From: Anolis carolinensis
Taxonomy: Eukaryota
Reading direction: 5' to 3'
Assembly (NCBI RefSeq): GCF_035594765.1
Contig: NC_085846.1
Span: 18,587,190-18,651,189, forward strand
DNA length: 64,000 nt
Of this stretch, positions 37,996 to 40,900 are shown in pieces. Position numbers and translations under genes: made by a program. The notes beneath the pieces are model-generated. The model saw only the letters and a list, made by a program, of their open reading frames with translations, did no database searches and had not been told where the DNA came from. Numbering within the stretch: position 1 is the stretch's first letter; the number at the start of each line of letters is the position of its first letter.

Positions 37996-40900
37996 ATGAT
38001 GGATTGCAAACCAAGGATGGAAAGTTTGGACCCCAGCTCAACCAAGGACTCACTGCTGATGGATGTTGAAGGAATCCTTTACCCCAAGGAAACTGGGATG
38101 TATTGGGAGGAGATACAGAACTTTAAAGCTCGGCCTGATGATCTTCTTATTTGCACTTACCCCAAAGCAGGTAAATGTTGTCATTGGTAAAAAGAGTGGA
38201 AGGGGGTGGGTTGGTGAGTATGGAAGATAAGAGTGTAAGGACTGAAAGGGGTGGAGAGGTAAGTTGGAAACAGAATGGGGTATGGTTAAAAACCTACTGG
38301 ATGAATTCTATGCTCTTCATATTTCTTTTCCCAATACCTTCCCATACCAGGGACTACTTGGATGCAGGAAATTGTGGATATGATCCAACATGGAGGAGAC
38401 CCAGAGAAATGTGCTCGGGCTCCGATCTATCAACGCAGTCCCTTCGTAGGGTGCAGCTTTCGAGTTTCCATCCCTACAAGTGAGGAGGAATTACTCTTTT
38501 ACTGTGATAATATGTAGATGTGTGCATTTCCTGCCAACAAGCTTAATGTTTTCTTCTGGTGTCACAGGCATTGAAAAAATAAACGCAATGCCCTCTCCAC
38601 GCACACTCAGAACCCATTTCACAGTTCAGCACCTACCACCTTCCTTTTGGGATCAGAAGTGCAAGGTGAGAAAAATGGGACGGGGTTTGTGTGAGATCGG
38701 TTTGTTATGAGCCAAGGTTCTAGTATCTGACCTCTTTCAGTTTCTTATCATAAGAAAGTTTTTACAAGTCCGGGGGTGCTGTGGTTTTAGTTTTGAACAT
38801 GTTTTCTATGGATTTCAACCTCATTTTTAATCATTTTAATGTAAGCCACTTTGAGTCTCCTTGCAGAGAATAAAAGCAGGGTATAAATAAGCATGATGAT
38901 GATGATGATGATGATGATGATGATGAGCCTTAGAGTGCTTTGCCAAACGGTTATAGTGCCTTGACAAACTACAAATTCCAGAATAGAATAATTTCCCAGT
39001 GTGAAAGAAGGATGGTGGAGAGAGAGAGTTCAGACATTTGGGTTCTCTTATCTTTTTTCTGTTTTCAGATTATTTATGTGGCCAGGAATGCCAAAGACAA
39101 CATGGTTTCCTATTTCCACTTCCACAATATGACCAGTATAATTCCGGACAGTGGCAGCTGGGATGAGTTTATGGAGAATTTCATTGCAGGGAAGGGTGAG
39201 TGAAGGAAGATGGACATTGTGATGGAAATAATTAAAGGAATAAACCCTCACTGAAATCTCCATTTTTTTAAAACAAGAGGATGGTATTCTCTATTGTAGT
39301 AGTTCACAAACTTTTTTTGACCAGAGATAACTTTGACCAAGGATCACTCTCCAATATTAGTACCAAAAGGGTTATAAATCAGTTCTTGGTCAATTTTACA
39401 TTCGGCTTGGTTATTTGGGGTGCTGATTCAGAAAATTGCATTGGATAGATCACATCAGATCTAGTTTCTGATACAGAATATATGCCATCCAGTAGATGCC
39501 ATAAGCTCGCCCACAGAAAACCATATTTAATAATCTAGAAATGATGTGGTCTATCCAAGGAAATTTTATGAATCAGCACCCCAAATAGCCCCAGGAATAG
39601 GCCTAAAAACAAAGACACCAAGGCAACCCCACTTCCAGGTGCCACATGGAACAGCTCCGCTCAGGGGAAGGGAAGAGGAAGAGAAGCAGCAGTCAGGAGG
39701 CTTGTTGTCATGCCTTTCATGGATAGTCAGCTTCTCCCCTCCCTACATCCCCGTTGCCTCGGCACTATAAGAGGTTTTCATGAGACCAGTTGCTCTTGTT
39801 ACAACCGTGTAGTAACTGTGAGGCTGCAGACCATATTTTAGTTCTTGGGGACCACTGGTGGCCCACGGACCACAGGCTGGAAATCACTGCTGTATTGTAA
39901 CATATAGGTGAGAAAGGGAGCTTTCTCTCCGTTTTAATACATCCCCCTGCCCATATGGTTTCTATTTACTGAATATCACATATATTATTACACCATCTGT
40001 TGTGACAAACAAGTCAGAGGAAGGAGATAATTTGCAATTATTAAAGTGATAAAAACTAGAACCCCCTTTGGTATTTTGAGGGGGTTAGTGTATACCAATA
40101 GAATGGTGGCCATGCCACTTAGGCATCCTAGGTGTTGTGGTGTAAACCAACAACTTTTCCAAGTTCTGGAGAAGCACCGGTACATTCACAGGAAGAAAAA
40201 GGAAGCTGTGGGTGTCCTGAAGGAATTTCCTTCCAACTCTGGACAATTACAATATATACAATAGAATAGGGTAAAGTGTGAGTTGAATGTTGCTGTTTCT
40301 TATGTTCCTTCTGCAGTTTGTTGGGGCTCTTGGTTTGATCACGTTCAAGGCTGGTGGAAGGCTAAGGACCGTCATCCGATTCTATATCTGTTTTATGAAG
40401 ACATTAAAGAGGTAAGTGGCTCATATATGTTTACTAACCTATATTATAGGCCTGTCCCTCTTACCAACAAGATTGGGTTCCATGTTCCCGAGATCTATGT
40501 CCCCAATTATTCTGCTATGGTAGTTCTCCTACTAGATGTCCTTCCTTCTGGCCTATTTTCAAGGAACTTTGGGACTGATAGTTATGATAACATAATTTTT
40601 CCAAAGTCATAGCGGTGTTCATCTCTTACATCATAAATATGATATCCAATTTACTTAGGCTGCCAAGGTGGTGTGTTAGATCAGAGGCAAAATATGATCA
40701 TTATGCATGGCTGCCCCATGGCTGGCTTCTTCCAGGTTTCCTGCAGCCCAGAAAGAGATTTAATTGGTGCTCTGGTCAGTCAATCAAGTGGCAGCTCCAT
40801 GATGCCCGCTCATTGACTGGTAGGTCTCCTTCTAGATGTGACCCGGCTGTTTCCATTCTGGTCTGCCTTCTGGAAATATAGCCATGTGCTAGGGCTCAGA

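Follow-up and report, generated by a model that had tools for sequence, protein, structure and literature searches.

Gene 4 of the sulfotransferase array described here is very probably a hybrid, formed by one recent unequal crossover between its two neighbours, genes 3 and 5, and carrying control sequence of the gene 5 type. The array belongs to the lizard Anolis carolinensis and was analysed in a stretch of 64 kb, referred to throughout as the window. The case is genuine, clean and young, but the process behind it is well known: no new mechanism or enzyme is involved, and at the protein level the novelty is negligible.

Organisation of the array and family membership

Six paralogous SULT1C-like sulfotransferase genes have been located between positions 145 and 63507 of the window, all of them on the + strand and with a spacing of 10.5-13.7 kb (Table 1). 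Gene 1 is the most distant paralogue, its exon identity to gene 4 being 66-86%, while gene 6 is truncated by the window end. Genes 3, 4 and 5 each have a coding sequence of 915 nt, with GT-AG borders at every intron and no internal stops. The intact frame and splice sites of gene 4 are directly observed, its seven coding exons measuring 175, 129, 98, 127, 95, 178 and 113 nt and each intron having GT-AG borders; such exon sizes are typical of SULT1 genes. Exons 2-7 of genes 3 and 4 are 100% identical. The ATG of gene 3 is found at 27471 and is preceded by the codon ATA.

Table 1. Positions in the window of the genes, duplicated units, junction, read contigs and other features discussed in the text.
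Feature	Position	Strand	Remarks
Coding exon 1 starts, genes 1-6	145, 13758, 27468, 37996, 48517, 61566	+	
Gene 3, proposed upstream parent	27468-33009	+	SULT1C-like, 7 coding exons; exon mapping, GT-AG sites, open frame
Gene 4, putative chimera	37996-43530	+	304 codons plus stop, intact
Gene 4 coding exons	37996-38170, 38351-38479, 38568-38665, 39069-39195, 40317-40411, 42201-42378, 43418-43530	+	
Gene 5, proposed downstream parent	48517-55080	+	Intact
Tandem unit, copy 1	27527-38054		10,528 bp; gene 3 body, spacer, gene-5-type upstream region
Tandem unit, copy 2	38055-48575		10,521 bp; self-comparison with copy 1
Differences between the copies	30726/41253; 31032/41556; 33759/44280		C13/C10; G14/G10; SNP T33759/C44280
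Crossover interval	38055-38069	+	15 bp identical in genes 3, 4 and 5; parental equivalents 27527-27541, 48576-48590
620-bp segment	35888-36507, copy 46409-47028		Precedes genes 4 and 5; lacking before gene 3
Run X1 contig	37921-38142	+	222 letters, exact cover, bridges the junction
Run X2 contig	37921-38084		
Run X3 contig	37860-38084		
Run X4 contig	37881-38084		
Near-equal tract, genes 3/4/5	30418-32291 / 40946-42812 / 52489-54360		~1.9 kb; intron 5, exon 6, intron 6
N-terminal tail, two types	27468-27527, 37996-38055, 61566-61625		
Insert in gene 5 intron 5	51258-52272		1,015 bp, absent from genes 3 and 4; 516 bp 94.6% like 11506-12018
Direct repeat	58733-59106		Period ~90 bp; repeats 83% alike

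By profile, motifs and exon pattern, gene 4 is classed as a cytosolic SULT1-family sulfotransferase, with predicted PAPS-dependent sulfonation activity. Its exons 2-7 each match the Pfam family PF00685 (Sulfotransfer_1) with 24.4-58.4 bits, the curated cut-off being 22 bits, and the matches are collinear over profile positions 14-252 of 255. By itself, exon 1 gave no Pfam hit, but it matches SULT1C2 in the PDB (6.7e-09). When the exons were searched one by one, the nearest solved proteins were SULT1C2 and SULT1C3 (chains 3bfx, 2ad1, 2reo and 2h8k). Moreover, genes 3, 4 and 5 all show the 5'-phosphosulfate-binding loop TYPKAGTTW at residue 54 (consensus TYPKxGTTW) and the 13-residue 3'-phosphate motif, of the RKGxxGDWKxxFT type, at residue 266.

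The solved SULT1C2 and SULT1C3 chains share with the array genes their exon pattern and, in the PAPS-binding loop, the YPKAG form, but they carry the Lys of the K-T-H motif where the anole genes 3 and 4 have Arg, and the anole genes form a six-gene array. The catalytic His of this motif is present in genes 3 and 4, where it reads LRTH, with the Arg at residue 116 (exon 3, 28040-28137 / 38568-38665); the Lys before it, as LKTH or a close variant, is found in genes 1, 2, 5 and 6, as well as in the solved SULT1C2 and SULT1D1 chains. The Arg-for-Lys variant has been doubled by the duplication, being present in both genes 3 and 4.

Several other features of the array may be recorded at this point. 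Between genes 3 and 5, exons 1-3 show 17 non-synonymous and 4 synonymous changes (pN/pS 1.13), and exons 4-7 show 0 non-synonymous and 7 synonymous ones, with the protein changes clustering at residues 31-122, near the substrate loops. Two types of N-terminal tail occur: a stretch of 18 residues is exactly the same in genes 3 and 6, while genes 4 and 5 share a tail of 19 residues in which the change from ATA to ATG adds a Met, a distribution that hints at further old exchanges among the exon 1 copies. The insert in gene 5 (intron 5) probably represents a dispersed repeat, since 516 bp of it recur between genes 1 and 2. A direct repeat lies between genes 5 and 6, and an Rfam scan of the window gave no RNA family.

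The switch in coding exon 1 and its occurrence in independent reads

When the units of genes 3, 4 and 5 were aligned, a single switch was directly seen in the diagnostic substitutions: in 33901-38054, 199/199 place gene 4 with gene 5, and in 38070-43930, 238/238 place it with gene 3. No interleaved diagnostic substitutions were found in this three-way alignment, the only exceptions to the clean split being two homopolymer-length differences and the alignment ends; the claim of the sequence-only reading that the sites switch once is thus borne out. The same reading had assigned gene-5 alleles to gene 4 up to 38054 and gene-3 alleles from 38070, and both sets are in place. On the left, T38054 stands against G27526 of gene 3 and a 14-residue peptide is common to genes 4 and 5. 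On the right, A38070 stands against G48591 of gene 5, followed by CCCAAG, GGGATG and CGGCCT at 38086, 38099 and 38134, where gene 5 has CCCGAG, GGGAAG and CGGACT.

Since the gene-5-type sites end at 38054 and the gene-3-type sites begin at 38070, the switch falls within the 15 bp of the crossover interval, which occupies nt 60-74 of the coding sequence (codons 20-25, in coding exon 1). This narrow placement, already proposed in the earlier reading, agrees with the three-way alignment, with one qualification. In the outgroup genes 2 and 6 the bounding sites are T and A, so that G27526 is private to gene 3 and G48591 to gene 5, and the interval would widen if either of them arose after the event; a cautious interval of 62 bp, 38037-38098, results from the derived markers that gene 4 shares with gene 5 (G38036) or with gene 3 (T38099). 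A later mutation at either bounding site is nevertheless very unlikely, because only one substitution has occurred in 10.5 kb since the event. The breakpoints lie at exactly homologous, in-frame positions inside a 122-bp stretch of 97% identity, no inserted or templated letters were found at the joint, and the 15-bp identity tract is flanked by identity tracts of 16 and 15 bp.

The tandem structure is equally plain from self-comparison. The two copies of the unit show only three differences, all non-coding, namely two homopolymer lengths and one SNP. The spacer has been duplicated along with the gene, the copy number is raised by one and the length of the unit equals the parental spacing. With 1 substitution per 10,521 bp (K ~9.5e-5) and an assumed rate of 1e-9 substitutions per site per year, the age would be ~50,000 years, with a Poisson range of ~1,000 to 270,000 years, an estimate that is void if later homogenisation has taken place.

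Twenty public runs from seven studies, kept as short-read contigs, contain 50% or more of the words sampled from 37300-38800, with no RNA run among those containing the locus, and four of them, from four studies (X1-X4), were aligned to this region at 99% likeness. In each of these four runs, one contig without other letters joins T38054 and A38070. The contig of X1 spans the interval by 134 and 73 letters and carries 15 gene-5-type sites together with four gene-3-type ones (38070, 38086, 38099 and 38134). Strict bridging, defined as at least 31 letters on each side, is found in X1 only; the contigs of X2-X4 end at 38084, 15 letters beyond the interval and 30 beyond T38054, and the gene 3 path, with G at that site, merges there in the 31-letter word graph. 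The word length of 31 is taken from the overlap of 30 letters between consecutive contigs. At this point the identity between genes 3 and 5 extends over only 15 letters, too few for mis-joining in the graph to create a 31-letter word that has both alleles; such words must therefore be present in the reads. Furthermore, each run shows one private SNP per ~1.5 kb, so that the run haplotypes differ from that of the window.

The gene 5 path forking at 38040-38069 was not seen in any contig of X1-X4; graph clean-up may have dropped it as a bubble, this path rejoining gene-3-type sequence at 38100. In X3, an otherwise gene-3-type contig of 702 letters has G, the gene-5 letter, at 38086, so this diagnostic site is polymorphic, and a recurrent change there is plausible because the G allele creates a CpG (CCCGAG). 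Contig depth was not relied on as evidence of copy number, since contig depth is not copy number; the depths of the junction and right-flank contigs (62.8 vs 136 in X2, 11.2 vs 24.2 in X3) resemble one copy feeding a two-copy stretch.

Genomic reads joining T38054 to A38070, sought as a check against an assembly chimera, have thus been found in contigs of four independent runs, and such a chimera is largely refuted. As the junction is present in animals of four studies, gene 4 is common in the species and not private to one animal. The term "newborn", which had been applied to the gene, is consistent with one SNP in 10.5 kb, but does not hold in the sense of a private mutation.

Origin of the hybrid gene

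From these observations we infer a single and recent crossover, starting from a two-gene state, and the transcription of gene 4 from gene-5-type control sequence. Non-allelic homologous recombination would have brought the first coding exon of gene 5 together with that of gene 3 on the other chromatid or homologue, and the exchange would have been resolved within 38055-38069. The product would have gained one 10.5-kb unit and the hybrid gene 4, made up of the upstream region and codons 1-24 of gene 5, followed by codons 25-304, the introns and the 3' flank of gene 3. An unequal crossover duplicating 10.5 kb had been suggested from the outset, and it is supported by the position of the hybrid between intact parents, by the duplicated spacer and by the one in-frame homologous switch. 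The parents share a longer identity tract, of 969 bp, further 3', and the use of the 15-bp one counts against this reading and gives a replicative route some scope.

It is unlikely, although the array offers some grounds for it, that an older three-gene array was homogenised by long-tract conversion or repeated unequal exchange, the 10.5-kb unit being overwritten by its neighbour and the near-identity reflecting concerted evolution. The array does exchange sequence: over ~1.9 kb surrounding exon 6, genes 3/4 are near-identical to gene 5 (one substitution, two differences in homopolymer length), whereas their 5' halves are ~93% alike; this tract, which contains the 969-bp perfect one, points to an earlier gene conversion or exchange between the parents. 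The presence of the junction in animals of four studies would also fit an older arrangement, and gene conversion is able to mimic crossover chimeras without a change in copy number (PMC4041002). However, homogenisation requires a 10.5-kb tract whose two ends coincide, in two genes, with one homologous stretch of 15 bp, which a single crossover explains at once, and no remnant of older gene 4 sequence is found anywhere in the unit.

The same product might have been reached by a replicative route, with template switching or break-induced replication using the 15-bp match as microhomology in place of a meiotic crossover, and this is quite improbable. In its favour, the match at the junction, like the tracts beside it, is very short, and 15 bp is below the usual need of efficient homologous recombination; on the other side, the breakpoints are exactly homologous and in frame within the 97% identical 122 bp, and the joint has no extra letters. 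The letters as such cannot separate the crossover from the replicative route. Finally, it is hardly credible that the genome has genes 3 and 5 only and that gene 4 was created by one extra passage of the assembler through the repeat. Mis-assembly is well known to yield near-identical tandem copies, and the junction sits where the paralogues are locally most alike, but an artefact is largely refuted by the T38054-A38070 words in four independent short-read runs, by the one contig with 15 gene-5-type and 4 gene-3-type sites, and by the three differences between the copies, which were therefore not built from one sequence.

Parallels, protein and upstream region

The unequal crossover between genes 3 and 5 has well-known counterparts. 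The anti-Lepore HBB/HBD duplication of the beta-globin cluster contains a fusion gene between HBD and HBB in the same arrangement (PMC4041002). Judged by its sequence, gene 4 is an anti-Lepore-type duplication, in which the copy-number gain is visible. The globin event was, and that in the anole would have been, an exchange between misaligned tandem paralogues; in either hybrid the 5' end, together with the DNA that precedes it, derives from the downstream parent and the 3' end from the upstream one, and each hybrid sits between its two intact parents with the copy number raised by one. Unlike the globin case, gene 4 belongs to another gene family and another animal and has its switch so early in the coding sequence (60-74 nt) that the protein is almost purely that of one parent.

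The CYP11B1/CYP11B2 chimera of glucocorticoid-remediable aldosteronism likewise places the enzyme body of one paralogue under the regulatory region of the other and is flanked by both parents. Gene 4 resembles it as a crossover chimera in these respects; however, in CYP11B1/CYP11B2 the regulatory change has been demonstrated and causes disease, whereas in gene 4 it is putative, and the two upstream regions are 93-98% alike. Nothing specific was found in the literature on the locus, on lizard SULT genes or on chimeric sulfotransferases, and exact-product look-ups of the junction-spanning open frame (starts 37996, 37999 and 38017 to 38187) returned no record.

As regards the protein, genes 4 and 3 are set apart by residues 1, 4, 5, 7, 13, 14 and 20 alone, that is, by six residues and the extra Met, in the N-terminal tail, while gene 5 departs from gene 4 at 10 residues, all of them within 31-122. 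Transcripts of genes 3 and 4 would be distinguishable by their 5' UTR and the initial 59 nt of coding sequence only. Residues 1-16 fall outside the alignment to solved SULT1C2, so that the changes between genes 4 and 3 sit in the N-terminal tail and the hybrid is in effect a second gene-3 enzyme. Because the protein differs from that of gene 3 in this tail only, regulation or dosage would be the seat of any novelty, and the consequences are likely to concern these rather than catalysis.

Over 10.5 kb, the sequence preceding gene 4 is that of gene 5, and in this structural sense the "promoter swap" proposed in the sequence-only reading stands. Compared with the upstream region of gene 3, it is 93-98% identical apart from the 620-bp segment, which is situated 1.5-2.1 kb before the ATG; no other structural difference between the gene-3-type and gene-5-type upstream regions is as large. 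The ATG of gene 4 is immediately preceded by a polypyrimidine tract and an AG acceptor at 37995, and transcription would probably start in an unmapped upstream non-coding exon; since the acceptor adjoins the ATG, the promoter is likely to be at that exon.

In a more far-reaching reading, which we regard as distinctly unlikely, this very young copy-number gain would have risen quickly to high frequency because a second Arg-variant gene-3 isoform was useful under gene-5-type control, and gene 4 would represent an adaptive change of promoter in a detoxification enzyme, observed very soon after its origin. Taken as a crossover product, gene 4 is an unusually clean natural example of the growth of a tandem gene family, in which both parents, the hybrid and the exact point of exchange are still legible, hardly anything having changed since. 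Genes 3 and 4, with identical bodies and different upstream regions, could moreover serve as a natural experiment on the regulatory divergence of new duplicates, as any difference in their expression must come from the upstream DNA.
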